In this document: positions 53,450 to 61,111 of the stretch, one piece after another
Layout: each line of letters begins with the position of its first letter
Numbering within the stretch: the first letter of the stretch is position 1
Assembly: GCF_000143415.4 (NCBI RefSeq)
Contig: NW_003314280.1
Span: 186,001-250,000 of the forward strand
From: Selaginella moellendorffii
Taxonomy: Eukaryota > Plantae > Lycopodiophyta
Length of the DNA: 64,000 nucleotides
Reading direction: 5' to 3'
Notes under the pieces: model-generated
Seen by the model: only the letters and a program-made list of their open reading frames with translations
Databases searched by the model: none
Told to the model about the DNA's origin: nothing
Made by a program: the position numbers and the translations under genes

Positions 53450-54913
53450 GTGCGTGGAGCTGCTACGTTCTTGCGGTGAGTCCAGAGATGTCTCTCATCG
53501 CCGCTCGTGGCCACTGGTGCCACAGTTTCCTGAGCGATCAGATGTATGTCTGCTGTGGAAGCCTGGTCGATGCAAGAGATTTGCTGCCGGGGCTGGCCTC
53601 TCATGGACCCGGATGATCAAGGTCTTGTCCATCGATGGCAAGCGCTGCCGAGGCATTCCAGGTCTTCCAGCAGATGCTGCCCGCGGGCGTTCGTCCGGAG
53701 CATTCGTCACGGTTGTTAGCACTTGTTTTTCCTTGGAGGAGCGCTTCATGGTTGGATTGGAATCTGGGCTCATATTTGCCAATGCGGTGATCAATTTCCT
53801 CGCCAAGCGTGGGGATCGAGAATCTGCCAACAAGGCTTTCGAGAGATCGAGCCAGCGGGATGTGGCATCTTGGACGACAGTCATGGCAGCAAATACCCAG
53901 CATGGGCATCACAGGCAAGCTCTGGGGTTTTTTCAAGCGATGCTTGGAACAGCGCCGAGCAGCTTTGCGGCGCTTAACATCTGTGCTGGATTATCGTCGC
54001 CCAAGAATGGGGCGATGGTTGTCTCGCTCGTGGAGGAGTGTGGATTACGGACGTCTCGATCGGCACGAAATCATTCTCAGCGCAGTCCTCACGGCGTGCA
54101 ACACTCGGAACAATTTGGAGGCTTACGGACGGAAGTTCCACTCGTGGATCGACGAAGCGGGCTGGGAAACTAATGCTCTCGTAGCAAACGCTCTCGTCAC
54201 CATGTACGCAGCATGCGGTGCCACGGAGAGCGCTGAGGAGTTGTTGTCGAGGATGGACGTTGTCTCGTGGACCGCGGTTTTAGCCGGCTACTCTCAACTT
54301 GGTCGCTCCAAGGATTCGATCAGGCTCTTCAAATCGATGCTGCTGCACGGAGTGATCCGGATCGAGTGGCTTTTCTAACGCTTGCGCGTCTGGGAGCGAT
54401 GCCCTAGAAGGAAAGCTCGTCCACTCGCAGATCTTGGAGAGTGGACTCCAGGCGGACGTGACTGTCTCAAACTCGCTGCTCAACATGTACTGCAAGTGCG
54501 GCACGAAGCTGGAGGAAGCTCACGCTCACACAGCTTTGCTTGCCTCGAGCTCGGCATGGGACGTTCTCTCCTGGACGACGATTGTAGCGACGCGCGCCTC
54601 GAGCGGCAGTCCGGCAAGAGCAATGGAACTCTTCCGCGCGATGCAGCTACATGGCGTGATCCCTGACTCGATCACGTTCATCAACACCCTCCGGCTTGCA
54701 GCAACGCTGGCCTGGTGGAGCAAGCCGGGGATGTCTCTGCTGGGAGCGTGTAGTTTGTATTGCGACCATTTGCGCACGACTCTTCCCGACGCTCTTGCGC
54801 GAAGTCCCCGGCAATGCCGGCAGCTAACATCATTGCCTTGTCCAATGCCTCTGTGCCTACACAGTGATCAATCGACGATTGATCGAATCCAAGTTTTTGA
54901 CACACTCCATTAG
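53450..54913 (+). pseudogene. PLS-class PPR pseudogene
   Basis: PPR motifs (DVASWTTVM, VANALVTMYAACG, VSNSLLNMYCKCG) spread over several frames, with frameshifts and stops. Confidence 0.85.
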
Positions 54914-55181
54914 AGATGGAAGGGAATAGAAACATACGTTCTTCTATGGGTTCCTTCCCCGCCGCGAGGTGTGGGTCTAAACTCCTTTTGAGCTTGTGAA
55001 GGGGATGGAATCTCCTGGTTGCAAGGTGGAGGCGGCAGTTTTCTTCTTCCAGCACTGTCCAATTCCAGCATTGCGATGTGATATCATTCCAATCATGAAA
55101 CATTTTTAGTGTTTCACATGTGAGGTGACTAATTAAGTCAACAAAGTTGTTGACTTTAGTTTTATTCAACGCGCCAACTTT

Positions 55182-55363
55182 GACTTGATTTGGACTTCCA
55201 ATCTTTAATTCACTCGCGATGCCAATCAGAGACCTGTACAGGATGAAGTTTGTGGATGCTCAACGAGTGACTTGATTTGGACTTCCAATCTTTAATTCAC
55301 TCACCATTTAAAAAAAGACGAGATGCCAATCAGGGACCTGTACAGGATGAAGTTTGTGGATGC
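55182..55363. repeat. ~80-bp tandem duplication
   Basis: gacttgatttggacttccaatctttaattcactc...gatgccaatcag.gacctgtacaggatgaagtttgtggatgc occurs at 55182-55259 and 55269-55363. Confidence 0.9.
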
Positions 55364-55438: not shown

Positions 55439-55734
55439 TCAGGGATTACGGCCTCGCCCAGGAGGAGGTCGTTCCGGTCGAAATTCTCGGTAAGTCTGGG
55501 CAAAGAAAATTTCCATCAGGACATTTTCTCGATATGAATCATACATCCTACCTGAAGAAGGAACCTGGATTTGAATTTCAGGGTGGGAGCATCAAATTCT
55601 GCAGTCCGTTGGGAGAAAACTGATGAACAATTCTTCCTGGTACCTTGTTCTTCATGACAAGGAGCTCCATGTATGCCACCGACCAAAAGAAACCCGAGTA
55701 TGGAAGACACAAAAAAAATTCTTGCGAGTGCCAT
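55439..55734 (-). CDS. Small secreted peptide precursor 1 (64 aa; exons 55734-55644, 55598-55552, 55495-55439)
   Basis: MALARIFFVSSILGFLLVGGIHG-APCHEEQEFDAPTLKFKSRFLLQTYREFRPERPPPGRGRNP*; canonical GT-AG introns of 45 and 56 nt preserve the frame. Confidence 0.7.
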
Positions 55735-55880
55735 CTCTTGCTAACAAATTTGAGACACTTTTCATGGCAGACCCTTCAACTTATAGCTTTCACAAAGTCC
55801 AAGTCAAGTATCTCGTCTCGTTTGTCAAGTTAGCATATAAAGACCAAAAACTCGTATTAAGCGCAAGCTCTCAGTGTCAA

Positions 55881-55954
55881 GGCCGCGTAGCGTAGTGGAT
55901 CAGTGCGTCAGACTTCGAATCTGAAGGCTGTGGGTTCGAATTCCACCCTGGTCG
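55881..55954 (+). tRNA. tRNA-Arg(TCG), possibly a pseudogene
   Basis: Cloverleaf with TCAGA-CT TCG AA-TCTGA anticodon arm and GTTCGAAT T-loop; one acceptor-stem mismatch and a weak D stem. Confidence 0.8.
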
Positions 55955-55977
55955 TGTTTTGTCAGTAGCTCAAATAG

Positions 55978-56830
55978 TCAGTCGAACAAGTTGCTAATAA
56001 TTGAGTACTCCCAGCGAGACAATATCGCTGATACTATATTTTCACCATGATGAGAGGAAGACCGTAGCGGGCGATACGATGGCGACAAGCGAAACCGGAA
56101 GCGCTTGAGAATGGTGGCCAAGGCGATCTTGGCTTCGATGAGTGCAAAGGCTTGGCCAACACACACGCGGGGGCCAAGCGAAAAGGCCAGGAACGCGTTC
56201 GAGTGCTTGCACGGTCCATCCTTGAAGCTCTCCGGATTGAAGTCGTGGGTGTCGTGATGACTGGAATGGAGACCGCAGTTCCCTTTGGGACGAGGATGCG
56301 AAGATGAACACCACCACCGGTGGAGAGTTTCGTGGAGATCTATACAAGAAACTTCAAAGCAACGCAAAAACCTTACCAGCTTAAGCTTGCTGATTGAATT
56401 GGCTTCTGGAATGGCACCGTTGCAGACTTCCTGAGCCTCGACGCAAGCGCGCTCTGCCATTCCAAAGCCAAGAGCACAGCATGGACCAGTCTCCAGATGA
56501 GGAGACTACGTCGTCTTGTGGCCAGCAAAGAAAGTCTTGCACTCCTCCATCACGGGGAGAGAACGAAGAAAGAAAAACTTTACCGTATTCCTTGGACCAC
56601 TGGTGGCATCACATGCTCCACAATGTCGTGATTCAAGCCTGCCATGTCCCGCTCCTTGGCACTGTCTCTCATCTTCATCACCTTGCCGAAAGTCCTTGAC
56701 GGCCCCTGGATCCTGGCTTCGAATCCTTGCGTCGAGCGATCTTGGCTCCAGCCAAAACCTGGTTATGATCGATCGCCATAGCTTCACAACCACTGCTAGC
56801 AGCACCAGCAGCGTGCCCGTCCATATCGTG
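55978..56830 (-). pseudogene. Cytochrome P450 (CYP72-clan-like) pseudogene with large deletions
   Basis: WLEPRSLDARIRSQ, EECKTFFAGHKTT, LHETL, FSLGPRVCVGQAFALIEAK..LKRFRFRLSPSY; the pieces are out of frame. Confidence 0.85.
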
Positions 56831-57017
56831 GAATGCCTGCCGGCCCATTGGATCGCACAATATATTGTACAAGAACTTTCATTGAAACCCCCAAAGTTTT
56901 TTTCTAGAAAATCAGAACGATTCCTCAGCACCCATTGTTCCAAGGCGGCCATGGTGTGTTTTAGCTCGCCCCTCAAAGCAATAATCCCATGGAATGTAAT
57001 ACAGCAACAATTCGTTA

Positions 57018-57296
57018 TCAGGGATTTCTGCCTCGGGGAGGAGGAGAGCGTTTTGGTCGAAATTCTCGGTATGCTGGTGGGGGCATTTCTCGTTGTGAAT
57101 CATATCCTACCTGAAGAAGGAACCTTGACTTGAATTTCATGGTTGGAGCATCAAATTCTGCAGTCCATTATTTAGAGAAAACTGATGAAAAATTCTTCCT
57201 CGTACCTTGTTCTTCATGAAAAGGAGCTCCATGTATACCACCGATCAAAAGAAATCCGAGTATGCAGGACACAAAAAAAATTCTTACGGGTGTCAT
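57018..57296 (-). CDS. Small secreted peptide precursor 2 (76 aa; exons 57296-57206, 57157-57018)
   Basis: MTPVRIFFVSCILGFLLIGGIHG-APFHEEQEFDAPTMKFKSRFLLQVGYDSQREMPPPAYREFRPKRSPPPRGRNP*; paralog of 55439-55734. Confidence 0.65.
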
Positions 57297-57993
57297 CTCT
57301 TGCTACTTCGAACATTTGAGACCTCCATTCAAGTTTTTCAAAGCAGACTCAGAAGGTCCAAGTCAAGTATCTCGTCTCAGTCAAGCTGACAAATAAAGAC
57401 CAAAAGTTTGAAACCACGGGCGGGCTTTTGGTTTATCTATGGGCACTGTTTGCTTGCGATCATCAAGATTTATATTGTCAATCCTCGAGATTCTGGATAT
57501 TAAAAAAGAGAGTTTTGAGTTTAAGGTTTACTCTGAAAAGGCTCCTTAATTCCACACCTTTTACCGTGGTTATATAAGCTTGCCACAGCTGCGAGTCATA
57601 TTGTGGGTATGGAGCAAGAGAATTGGAAGGTTTTGCCAACACCGGAGCAAATTATGGAGAGGCGGCGCCTTTGGATACAGCGAAACCGAGCTGACTATTT
57701 GGAAGAGATTGGCGGGGAAACAGAGAAAGACGATGTGAAGCTGGAGAAACATTCTCCCGGGGCTTCAAACTCCTCTAAGAGAGTTGACGAGGAAAAAGAA
57801 GATGCTTGTCTAGAAGGCCACAACAGTAGTAATAGACTTCTTTGGTGGTTTTGTGATTCTTTGTTTTATCCTGTATAGTTTTTATTTGTTTTCTTGGAAA
57901 CAAATGTTGAAAGGAATATTTAGTTTTCTTACTCCCAGAGATAATTCCAACTTGTAAAAGGTGCTTAGGAACAGACATGTTTCATATCTAATG

Positions 57994-58062
57994 ACCTCAT
58001 GGCCCAATGGACAAGGCGCTGGTCTATGGAATCTCTGGCGCTGGTCTATGGAACCAGAGATT
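57994..58062 (+). pseudogene. tRNA-Arg(ACG) pseudogene (5' half only; anticodon decayed to ATG; internal duplication)
   Basis: gacctcatggcccaatggacaaggcgctggtcta(t)ggaaccagagatt matches the 5' part of plant tRNA-Arg(ACG); no T arm. Confidence 0.7.
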
Positions 58063-58106
58063 AATGGACAATCTTAATGAACAATCTTTGATCATGCATT
58101 TGTGGA

Positions 58107-58145
58107 GACCACGGTGGGATTTGACGCGGCCTTGACACTGAGAGC
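58107..58145 (-). pseudogene. Internally deleted tRNA-Arg(TCG) copy
   Basis: Reverse complement gctctcagtgtcaa-ggccgcgt-caaatcccaccgtggtc keeps the 5' flank and both tRNA ends. Confidence 0.75.
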
Positions 58146-58152
58146 ACAACCA

Positions 58153-58226
58153 CGACCACGGTGGGATTCGAACCCACAGCCTTCAGATCCGAAGTCTAAC
58201 ATGCTAATCCACTGCGCTACGCGGCC
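58153..58226 (-). tRNA. tRNA-Arg(TCG)
   Basis: GGCCGCGTAGCGCAGTGGATTAGCATGTTAGACTTCGGATCTGAAGGCTGTGGGTTCGAATCCCACCGTGGTCG; one D-stem mismatch. Confidence 0.85.
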
Positions 58227-58695
58227 TTGACACTGAGAGCTTGTGCTTATGTGATCATACCAGACGACCAAGATATTGTCAACTTCTCGAGCTTTAGATG
58301 ACTTTAAAAGGAGTAGCAAAAAGGCAAGGAAAACCAAGCAATGGCATTGACGAGCGCAGTATTCCTTTTAGTTTTGATCAGTGGTCCACATTATACTTGT
58401 GCTTCTTTCCATTCACAACGTATTGAAATTATTTGATCTTTCTTACCTTCTTCTTCCTCAAAACTGCGATGGAATGTCCTCGCCCTCTCAATCCAGGTTA
58501 TGTCTATCAAATTTCCATAGAGAATGGCAAGAATTTCCTGTTAGTTCCTATCTCATCTTCCGGACCACTGCCCGGCTATCAGACCCCAGCCATCAACTCG
58601 CCCTCCGCGCGCGGTCAATCCATAGTAAAACTCTTTCTTGTGTATTAGCAAAATGCAATTTGAAACTAAAATTCTACCTTAGGGTTTTTGCGGCA

Positions 58696-59882
58696 ATGGC
58701 AGTGATGAATGCCGCGGCGTCGTCTCCGTGCTGCTTCAATCCCAGGTGAGAGCTGGATTAGGAATGTGAGTGAATTCGCATCGGCTGTGGCAGGAGCAGC
58801 AGCTGCGAGAAATCGGCAGCGCTATTTTCCAGCCAGTGGCGCCAGGACGAATCTGGGTTCTGCGTCTCCAGGAGTGCGAATGCGAGGCCGGGCCGAGCAG
58901 GGATTTGCCGTGCGCAAGTAACGATGATGCCAATCGGCACTCCCAAAGTGCCTTACAGAACTCCCGGCGAGGGAACTTGGCAGTTCGTGGATATTTGGAA
59001 TGTGCTGGTATGCTACTTCGTCTCGTTTTCTTCTTCTTTTGCTGCTCTAGACTTTGTGCCACTCCGTGACTTCTTTGCTCCAGTATCGAGAGAGAATCAT
59101 TTTTATCGGGCAACACATTGACGAGGAGTTTGGCAATCAAGTGCTCGCGACTATGCTCTACTTGGACAGCGTTGATTCCAGCAAAGATCTCCATTTCTAC
59201 ATGAGTTGTCCTGGTGGAGACGTAAGCTTCTCGCTTTTCATGAACCTTTCATCTTTTCACTAGTTTCATTTGCCAGTTAACTCCTTCCATGGCCATATAC
59301 GACACAATGGGAAGCGTGAAAAGCCGGATGGGAACGATGGCACTCGGCTATGCGTATAACATCGCTGGATTCTTACTTGCGGCTGGAGAAAAGGTTGAGT
59401 CTCTTCTGATTTCTTTCAACGCCATAAATTCCGTGCCTTGACCAGGGACTGCGAACCTCCATGCCTCTGACAAGAATTGCTATGCAACCGCCTCAAGGAG
59501 CTGCTCGCGGAAAAGTGAGAGCCTTTGCATTGATCATCCAATTGTCGTTTTAGATCTGAGCGTTGTTTTTTGCAGGCAGCCGACATTCAAAACGAGGCTA
59601 AGGAACTATCTCGAGTTCGAGATTATCTCTTCAAGCAACTAGCTGTGAAAACTGGGCAGCCAGAAGAAAAGGTAATCTGAGAAGCATGGCATTTACGCAG
59701 CCACGCATTTGTCTGATGCTGGCATCTCAATGCTGTTGCAGATTCACAAAGACTTTAGCAGGATAAAAAGGTTTTCTGCGCAAGAGGCTCTAGACTATGG
59801 CCTGATTGACAAAATCATAAGGCCTCCCACGGTCAAACCAGATGCAAGCTCCAAGGCCGAGGCCGGTCGTGGCATCGGCTGA
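58696..59882 (+). CDS. CLPR2: Plastid Clp protease non-catalytic subunit ClpR2, multi-exon
   Basis: MMPIGTPKVPYR..EGTWQFVDIWNVLYRERIIFIGQ, ATMLYLDS, GYAYNIAGFLLAAG (catalytic Ser absent). Confidence 0.88.
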
Positions 59883-60141
59883 AAGCTTGATGAATATCTT
59901 TTGCATTTCATGTTGCATACGTGGCAGCTGGCTCAATTGACGTAATTGTGCTCGTGTTCCTTAGGTTTAATCACTCTCCACGAGCAAAGTCAACAAGTCC
60001 GCGTTTAAAATCATACGTGGAAAATGCGAGGAGTGGACTTTCGCTCTGTATAGACGGCAGAAACTCTGGTTCCATGACATCATATTGACTTGCATGCTCT
60101 GAATAAAATGTGGAGAGCACAAGGCGCAATTCACCCAGCAA

Positions 60142-60357
60142 ATGGCATTCATAAGAATGATAATGGTTTACCTTTTGATCGGATTTTTCTTCATCTATGA
60201 CGCTTCTCAAGGTTCGCTAGGTGATTTCTTTGTTAGTCCTGTGAAATCAAGTGAAATGGCAGCTGCTCCTGACACTTCGGTGATGAGACGCAAGAAGGAA
60301 CCACAGTTTCGACCACCCTGGCGCGTCACTAGCCCACCGCACGGGATCAATCCATAG
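60142..60357 (+). CDS. Small secreted peptide precursor 3 (71 aa, single exon)
   Basis: Signal peptide MAFIRMIMVYLLIGFFFIYDASQG, basic site RRKK, C-terminus QFRPPWRVTSPPHGINP*. Confidence 0.6.
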   Translation: MAFIRMIMVYLLIGFFFIYDASQGSLGDFFVSPVKSSEMAAAPDTSVMRRKKEPQFRPPWRVTSPPHGINP

Positions 60358-61111
60358 TAGCACGAGAATGAAATGTATACCGTCGCTAAACGCCATCCCA
60401 TATGAGTGTGGACTCTTTGATCTCGTTTTATTTGAAGGTGCAATTTTCATAGCTGAAAATATGCTCTGCAAACTGAAGTCTTAGCTTTGATTTTGGAGTG
60501 AAACAATTTGTGATAGATTTGAAAATGTTAGAAACAGTTTTAGAAGACCTGATCATTCAATATTTCTTGAACATTAGACTCCAGACTCATGACCTCTGCT
60601 CCTGGGCTCTTGGACTATATGTAAGTTATACTTCTCCCTGCTGGTTCTTTAGTACGTTTTAAACTTGCAGATGCCGAGATTGTAGAGCCCATGTTAGACT
60701 AAACTATTAATTTCACTGTACTCCCAGCTTTGGCCGGCGAGTTAGACTTTCTTGAAGGTTTGACTTGCAATGTTCCAACTAGGTTGGAGCATACAAAAAG
60801 CACGAGGGGAGCAAACCACAGAAGAAATGAAATTAGCCAGAGAGATTTTGGTGTTTCTTGTAATGGGATTGATTATATTTGTTAGTGGTGAAAAATTTGT
60901 TAAAATCCTTTTGTAACAAAAAAAAACCTATATCTGCTTGAAGATAATTTAAAACTAAAAACCTGACGATGATTTTGAACTGCGAATCAGACAATTCTAA
61001 TCGCATATTTCTTGTGCTTTCCAGGAAATTAGTCCATCACGAATTTCGATCCCCCACGATCCATATTATATTAAACAAATTGTTGAACATTTTGCATAAA
61101 TTTTGATATGG

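Follow-up and report, generated by a model that had tools for sequence, protein, structure and literature searches.

A cluster of unannotated small genes in Selaginella moellendorffii encoding putative secreted peptide precursors with a common Asn-Pro C-terminus

Four mini-genes and their transcripts

We analyzed a stretch of 64,000 nucleotides (nt) from the lycophyte Selaginella moellendorffii (RefSeq assembly GCF_000143415.4, contig NW_003314280.1, positions 186,001 to 250,000 of the forward strand; hereafter the window, numbered from its first nucleotide). Sequence analysis reveals four related, unannotated mini-genes within 5 kb, here called g1 to g4, which encode small proteins of 54–79 amino acids with a signal-peptide-like N-terminus. 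A previous reading of the letters alone (the sequence-only reading) had proposed a cluster of three such genes with products of 64–76 amino acids. These three genes are real, and the translations of g1, g2 and g3 reproduce the previously described products exactly, but the count has to be raised to four by the addition of g4. All introns proposed for g1 and g2 have GT..AG ends and, with 45–56 nt, fall into the size class of those in the neighbouring ClpP gene (52–76 nt). Read exon by exon, the g1 product of 64 amino acids consists of MALARIFFVSSILGFLLVGGIHGAPCHEEQ, EFDAPTLKFKSRFLLQ and TYREFRPERPPPGRGRNP. In the alignment of both genes, the stop-containing intron 2 of g1 corresponds to a shorter piece of g2 that is exonic and in frame. 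Ahead of the start codons lie upstream ATGs in other frames, namely at 57315 (-) for g2, at 55765 (-) for g1 and at 60108 (+) for g3; those of g1 and g2 open overlapping upstream open reading frames of 33–37 codons, and the positions of the upstream ATGs are not homologous. These ATGs may lower translation, or transcription may start downstream of them.

Table 1. Position and content of the mini-genes and of neighbouring features in the window
Feature	Position	Strand	Content
g1	exons 55734..55644, 55598..55552, 55495..55439	-	64 amino acids, ends EFRPERPPPGRGRNP
g1 exon 1	55644..55734	-	start codon and predicted signal peptide MALARIFFVSSILGFLLVGGIHG/AP..HEEQ; phase-1 end at GT donor
g1 proposed intron 1	55599..55643	-	GT..AG, 45 nt, in frame, without stop
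g1 exon 2	55552..55598	-	EFDAPTLKFKSRFLLQ
g1 intron 2	55496..55551	-	GT..AG, 56 nt, in-frame stop inside
g1 exon 3	55439..55495	-	TYREFRPERPPPGRGRNP and stop
g2	exons 57296..57206, 57157..57018	-	76 amino acids, ends EFRPKRSPPPRGRNP
g2 exon 1	57206..57296	-	predicted signal peptide MTPVRIFFVSCILGFLLIGGIHG/AP..HEEQ
g2 intron	57158..57205	-	GT..AG, 48 nt, stop inside
g2 exon 2	57018..57157	-	EFDAPTMKFKSRFLLQVGYDSQREMPPPAYREFRPKRSPPPRGRNP and stop
g3	60142..60357	+	intronless open reading frame, 71 amino acids, ends QFRPPWRVTSPPHGINP; MAFIRMIMVYLLIGFFFIYDASQG/S…RRKKEPQFRPPWRVTSPPHGINP
g4	58341..58625	+	probably decayed copy; repeat search, translation, splice enumeration
Conserved block upstream of g1	55790..55819	-	GAGACGAGATACTTGACTTGGAC, with TTGAC(T) W-box-like cores
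tRNA-Arg(TCG)	55881..55954	+	divergently upstream of g1
tRNA-Arg(TCG) copy	58153..58226	-	divergently upstream of g4
Cytochrome P450 pseudogene	55981..56976	-	heavily deleted; separates g1 from g2
ClpP protease gene	58769..59882	+	intact, expressed; between g4 and g3
Tandem duplication downstream of g1	55181..55363		units of about 87–104 nt; copies 55181–55259 and 55268–55363, 95–96% identical

The four proteins share a basic, Pro-rich tail that reaches the stop codon and that a C-terminus-anchored alignment condenses to [FI]RP-x(4-7)-[PST]x-P-[PG]-[RH]-[GA]-x-N-P-COOH. The individual tails read F R P E R P P P G R G R N P in g1, F R P K R S P P P R G R N P in g2, F R P P W R V T S P P H G I N P in g3 and I R P Q P S T R P P R A V N P in g4. 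Chance expectations were obtained from 300 randomisations of the window under a first-order Markov model, i.e. based on its dinucleotide frequencies. The pattern FRP-x(3-14)-NP-stop was observed three times against 0.017 expected per 64 kb, and an NP-stop end with at least four prolines in the last 14 residues four times, exactly in g1–g4, against 0.17 expected. The N-termini were measured by their best hydrophobic window of 12 residues on the Kyte-Doolittle scale, with the 356 ATG-initiated open reading frames of at least 40 amino acids as background. Mean values of 2.6–2.9, as found in g1–g4 (2.58 for the hydrophobic core of g1 exon 1), are reached by 1.7–3% of this background, and small residues occupy positions -3 and -1 of the putative signal cleavage sites (IHG/AP and SQG/S). 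The architecture claimed by the sequence-only reading is supported: a signal-like N-terminus is followed by a variable region and, directly before the stop codon, by a Pro-rich motif, as in plant peptide precursors. For g3, whose DNA is independent of g1 and g2, the joint chance of a signal-like N-terminus and the tail amounts to about 3–5 in 10,000.

To this we could add RNA data in the form of Logan contig sets from four runs (X1, X2, X3 and X20; library type unknown). Contigs report presence only, and transcript ends, strand and reliable expression levels are not readable from them. They derive from spliced RNA because the five introns of ClpP are removed in all four runs, four of them with GT..AG ends and one listed with TA..GT. 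For g2, the proposed intron is likewise removed in each run, the runs coming from four studies; the joint 57157>57206 (CT..AC on the plus strand) fuses the two frames of g2 precisely. Contigs of X2, X3 and X20 are uninterrupted over 57013–57157 and continue into a 3' untranslated region (UTR) to about 56833, while an X3 contig extends to 57395, giving a 5' UTR of about 100 nt. The g2 gene model is thus confirmed.

The picture for g1 is mixed. Intron 2 is removed in one run (X20, joint 55495>55552); contigs of X1 and X3 stop exactly at 55552, and one X1 contig crosses this intron unspliced. Exon 1 is covered by contigs of X1, X20 and X3, and in the contigs of these same runs the proposed intron 1 is retained; its removal was never seen in the four runs. 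Since the retained intron 1 is in frame and free of stop codons, the observed form of g1 encodes 79 amino acids with the same tail. For g3, an X1 contig that begins in the last ClpP exon spans 59740–60269 and a contig of X3 spans 60276–60432; neither X2 nor X20 covers the gene, though both contain ClpP; this suggests that g3 is a separately regulated transcript. Cover varies greatly among the runs, and g2 and g3 are both highest in X1, by a crude measure. Altogether, the contigs support the presence of real, unannotated and transcribed small genes.

The fourth copy emerged from a repeat search, in which the final 32 nt of g3 including its stop codon recur at 58596–58627 with 84% identity. The C-terminal frame of g4 is open over 58545–58625 and ends …PAIRPQPSTRPPRAVNP followed by a stop. 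Upstream, the ATG at 58341 starts MALTSAVFLLVLISGPHYTCASFHSQ and leads through exon 1 (58341–58419; MALTSAVFLLVLISGPHYTCA/SFHSQ) to a phase-1 GT donor at 58420; this donor follows H-x-x-Q and thus agrees with intron 1 of g1 and g2 in both position and phase. Splice enumeration found no single intron that links the intact signal-peptide exon 1 with the tail. The sole intact reading with the whole exon 1 removes two introns (58420–58496 and 58540–58582) and gives 54 amino acids ending …NFLPQPSTRPPRAVNP. RNA cover over 58152–58742 is zero in all four runs, and g4 is probably a decayed or silent paralogue.

Kinship, selection and neighbourhood

Both minus-strand genes, g1 and g2, are 82% identical by alignment column; the alignment starts some 110 nt before the ATG and extends through the stop codon, and intron 1 is no less similar than the exons. 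They are a recent tandem duplicate, so that the pair counts as one independent observation. In global alignments against shuffles that preserve the three-zone architecture, g3 matches g1 and g2 with p = 0.013 and 0.017, respectively, and an ungapped match MA..R...V....GF links the signal peptides. Judged by these alignments, g3 would be an old paralogue of g1 and g2 that has lost nearly all similarity on the DNA level. The copies are bridged by g4, which has the tail DNA and the stop codon in common with g3, and the position of the phase-1 intron and an upstream tRNA-Arg gene in common with g1. We also tried an intronization model in which g3 is colinear with the intron-1-retained form of g1; its score was below that of the spliced form (p = 0.07), and it was rejected.

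Comparison of g1 and g2 by the Nei-Gojobori method counts 11 synonymous and 13 non-synonymous differences, corresponding to substitution rates of 0.28 per synonymous (dS) and 0.095 per non-synonymous site (dN) and a dN/dS of 0.33 (binomial p against neutrality, 0.028). The reading frame is thus under some constraint. The Arg at position -3 of the motif is retained through a double synonymous change (CGT/AGA), and the stretches YREFRP and RGRNP do not differ between the two genes.

Several features of the neighbourhood recur along with the genes. The conserved block upstream of g1 has a partner at g2 (57349–57378), which is 93% identical, contains an exact 20-mer present twice and lies in the transcribed 5' region of g2. 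The 8-mer TTGACTTG was considered as an upstream element common to g3 and g1/g2; with 9 occurrences in the window against 3.45 expected it is unconvincing. Each of the two tRNA-Arg genes lies about 115–150 nt from its peptide gene, g1 or g4, and together with their flanks they form an inverted repeat of 102 nt with 89% complementarity (arms 55858–55959 and 58148–58249). Since the tRNA pair and its flanks stand in inverted repeat beside g1 and g4, it seems that a tRNA and its peptide gene were duplicated together, in inverted orientation. A search of 54.5–61 kb against Rfam returned nothing beyond these two tRNAs.

Further observations concern the flanking genes. In the cytochrome P450 pseudogene, only the heme-binding C-terminal part matches the Pfam family p450 (profile positions 380–445), and a membrane-anchor-like N-terminal piece lies at 56506–56976. 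Many RNA contigs fall on this pseudogene with 90–95% identity and odd joints, and probably stem from expressed paralogues elsewhere. A further transcribed stretch, 57535–57903, separates g2 from the second tRNA and is represented by X2 and X20 contigs with 9–12 mismatches and small indels; a plus-strand open reading frame at 57603–57878 resembles the N-terminal piece of the P450 (…RNRADYLEE… versus …RNRSDFLEK…). In the 3' region of ClpP, 24 other letters replace the 64 bases 59945–60008 in X1, and X20 carries an insertion of 10 nt behind 60008. Both changes lie shortly before g3 and resemble indel differences between haplotypes or strains.

Comparison with described peptide families

The sequence-only reading had taken the genes for an undescribed family, and in the protein, profile, Pfam and full-text searches no described family matched them. 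The genes g1, g2 and g4 were searched as exon pieces. Word-index protein searches with g2 exon 2, g3 and the 72-amino-acid open reading frame of g1 as queries gave no candidate, and an exhaustive profile search with HMMER, which covered 1.84 billion representative proteins, yielded no genuine relative; its four matches to repeat proteins score via multiple unrelated stretches and are spurious. Pfam assigned no family to the four pieces even at E = 10. A protein atlas offered only sub-threshold neighbours, among them unnamed small streptophyte proteins (0.83–0.84) and an RGF9 cluster (0.79), which we treat as a lead only. Full-text literature searches for the motifs returned only chance letter strings.

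At the level of general architecture, all four copies have the generic features of modified secreted peptides, i.e. precursors below 200 amino acids with an N-terminal signal and a C-terminal motif (PMC8462819). The likeness to CEP genes, with which the sequence-only reading had proposed kinship, extends to a small precursor in which a variable region connects the N-terminal secretion signal with a Pro-containing C-terminal motif of about 15 residues. The signal, as judged by hydrophobicity, and the variable region are present here as in CEP precursors, and some CEP genes stop directly after the domain (PMC4197245). The CEP domain starts with [DA]FRPT, and CEP1 reads DFROTNPGNSOGVGH (PMC8462819 Table 1); the corresponding residues are EFRP in g1 and g2, QFRP in g3 and IRP in g4, where the Phe is lost, and Thr5 is present in none. 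The motifs of g1 and g2 are 15-mers counted from E, with Pro4 and Gly12 in both and Pro7 in g1. The agreement goes no further. Whereas CEP and PIP peptides have in common the GxGH of the SPGxGH end (PMC8462819), the tails here finish in GRGRNP, PRGRNP, PHGINP and PRAVNP, that is R/H-G-x-N-P in the first three, are very basic and lack Pro11 and His15. Neither Pfam nor the profile search recognizes a CEP.

With CLE peptides, the tails share P-x-G-x-N-P, which equals CLE positions 4–9 (MpCLE2, KEVPNGPNPLHN); precursor size and secretion signal are comparable, and Selaginella has CLE genes. The proteins differ from the CLE pattern R-x-x-P-x-G-P-[ND]-P-[LI]-H-[NH] (CLE sequences in PMC8462819 Table 1) in that they stop at position 9, without the essential [LI]-H-[NH], in that R, I or V takes the place of Pro7, and in that Arg1 is out of register. 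IDA/IDL and PIP/PIPL peptides are likewise Pro-rich, basic C-terminal 12–15-mers from precursors of about 70–100 amino acids with SPP or PPS cores, but the terminal H-N of IDA, the GxGH of PIP, the PIPPS core and hence the IDA/IDL pattern PIPPSxPSKRHN are absent here. The cluster genes, as judged from these motifs, are therefore not members of CEP, CLE or IDA.

A stretch KEFRPTPRGGEGTH at 54946–54987 (-) was considered as a fifth, CEP-like member; it has neither a signal peptide nor a supporting splice and was treated as chance. The open reading frame around it, 54910–55071 (-), contains KEFRPTPRGGEGTHRR, which by eye is nearer to the CEP consensus DFRPTxPGxSPGxGH than g1–g4. It lies in or just past the 3' UTR of g1, as marked by low-depth contigs, and is probably a chance occurrence, about two [DEQ]FRP matches being expected per window by a rough estimate.

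Probable secreted peptides of a lineage-restricted family and the alternatives

We consider it probable, with moderate confidence, that the cluster encodes functional secreted prepropeptides of a new, lineage-restricted small family that undergoes birth-and-death evolution. The local array would gain and lose copies, with g1 and g2 as the recent tandem pair, g3 as the old paralogue and g4 as the decayed one. The signal peptide would direct co-translational entry into the endoplasmic reticulum and be cleaved after IHG in g1 and g2 or after SQG in g3. Subtilase-type proteases could then cut the pro-region at candidate sites near KSRFLLQ (g1, g2) or RRKK (g3), and the contiguous prolines (SPPP, PPP and SPP) are candidates for hydroxylation and possibly arabinosylation. 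The freed basic C-terminal peptide of 13–19 residues would act extracellularly. The sequence does not discriminate between a receptor ligand (phytocytokine or hormone) and a direct cationic defence peptide; we lean slightly towards a signalling, phytocytokine-like role. Fast change of the tail, a clustered array with a pseudogene and run-to-run differences in cover fit a phytocytokine or defence role no less than that of a conserved developmental hormone. The invariant G/A-x-N-P end favours specific recognition over mere composition.

Several points weigh against this explanation. The signal peptides are predictions from hydrophobicity, and conservation beyond the 5-kb cluster is unproven, as the protein searches gave no relative. 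On the transcript side, the contigs that show g1 are all of low depth and continue across the tRNA gene as far as the P450 fragment, which leaves independent expression of g1 weak or unproven; g3 may lie within a long ClpP 3' UTR, since its X1 contig is continuous with the last ClpP exon; and the start codons of g1 and g2 are preceded by the upstream ATGs. As to selection, dN/dS between g1 and g2 is 0.58 in the signal exon, 0.07 in exon 2 (EFDAPT[LM]KFKSRFLLQ) and 0.42 in the motif exon, from tiny counts of 1 non-synonymous change in exon 2 and 6 in the motif. Hence exon 2, and not the motif, is the most conserved segment, and the mature-peptide region is not more conserved than the pro-region in this pair. 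The tails of g3 and g4 differ by four amino-acid changes against one silent change. Finally, every variant that the RNA contigs show within coding sequence changes an amino acid: the pro-region of g2 has 57086 (M>L) and 57083 (P>S), the signal peptides of g2 and g1 have 57289 (P>L) and 55717 (I>M), respectively, and the tail of g3 has 60323 (R>H). In the tail of g2, no variant is listed in the four runs.

Unlikely, though it accommodates several of these points, is that the products are secreted cationic Pro/Arg-rich defence peptides, directly antimicrobial or part of a fast-evolving immune repertoire, rather than conserved developmental hormones. The tails have a high content of Arg and Pro, contain RP, PP and PRG units and carry a net charge of about +1 to +5, and the fast evolution of the peptide part, the exclusively non-synonymous allelic changes, the clustered array with its decayed member and the cover that differs greatly between runs, with its crude peak in X1 for g2 and g3, agree with such a role, as do the W-box-like cores of the conserved upstream block. 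The tails also resemble insect and mammalian Pro-rich antimicrobial peptides, presumably, a likeness that we take as a lead only. However, the net charge of g3 is only about +1, the block of g2 lies within its transcribed leader and the 8-mer TTGACTTG is common in the window. Furthermore, the invariant terminal N-P and the Gly or Ala at -4 point to a recognition motif rather than to composition.

It is also rather unlikely that the genes are non-functional, young or decaying open reading frames in transcribed intergenic DNA, UTR-like or non-coding, whose likeness reflects local duplication only. The empty homology searches would be expected in this case, as would a divergence of g1 and g2 of only about 10% with an intron as alike as the exons, a silent and broken g4, g1 contigs that cross neighbouring features, a g3 contig joined to ClpP in X1, and the upstream ATGs. 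In contrast, g3 combines an ATG, a signal peptide, an open frame and FRP…PP.G.NP-stop without DNA similarity to g1 and g2, which makes the small joint probability given above relevant here; the observed splice of g2 joins its frames precisely; and the dN/dS of g1 and g2 departs from neutrality.

We are doubtful of a further possibility, in which an unknown lycophyte ligand family joins a CEP-like head [DE]FRP to the CLE-like core P-x-G-x-N-P, either as a surviving relative of the ancestor of ligands of class XI leucine-rich-repeat receptor kinases (LRR-RK XI) or as the ligand of an orphan HSL-clade receptor of Selaginella; recognition of N-P-COOH would then be unlike the H-N/G-H rule. Most improbable to us is a true distant relationship to CEP, or to a common ancestor of CEP, CLE and IDA, with the products as ligands of a lycophyte LRR receptor kinase that predates duplication of the HSL/CEPR clade: CEPR1 and CEPR2 are angiosperm subclades and S. 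moellendorffii does have three HSL-clade receptors according to the literature, and the [EQ]FRP head, the 15-mers of g1 and g2 and the P-[RH]-G-x-N-P of the tails would fit, but such an agreement of 4–6 residues in short stretches is reachable by convergence, the ends GxGH and H-N/H-H are both absent (the latter, in CLE, IDA and RGF, contacts two arginines of the receptor; PMC8462819), Pfam, profile search and protein atlas give no link, and CEPs are not found in lycophytes (PMC4197245, PMC8462819), the motif scan of Ogilvie et al. having turned up none of canonical form in S. moellendorffii and dated the family after the lycophyte split, to seed plants (PMC4197245).

Because annotation misses tiny spliced genes, little has been mapped of the peptide-hormone families of non-seed plants; the present cluster is a transcript-backed example. 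If its products are true ligands, FRP…PxGxNP peptides would bear on the divergence of the CEP, CLE and IDA ligands and of the HSL/CEPR receptors and would put to the test whether a C-terminal Asn-Pro can stand in for the His-Asn or Gly-His anchor. If they are true defence peptides, they would be a plant example of Pro/Arg-rich secreted effectors. Under either role, the gene sets of Selaginella overlook whole clusters of secreted proteins of 50–80 amino acids.

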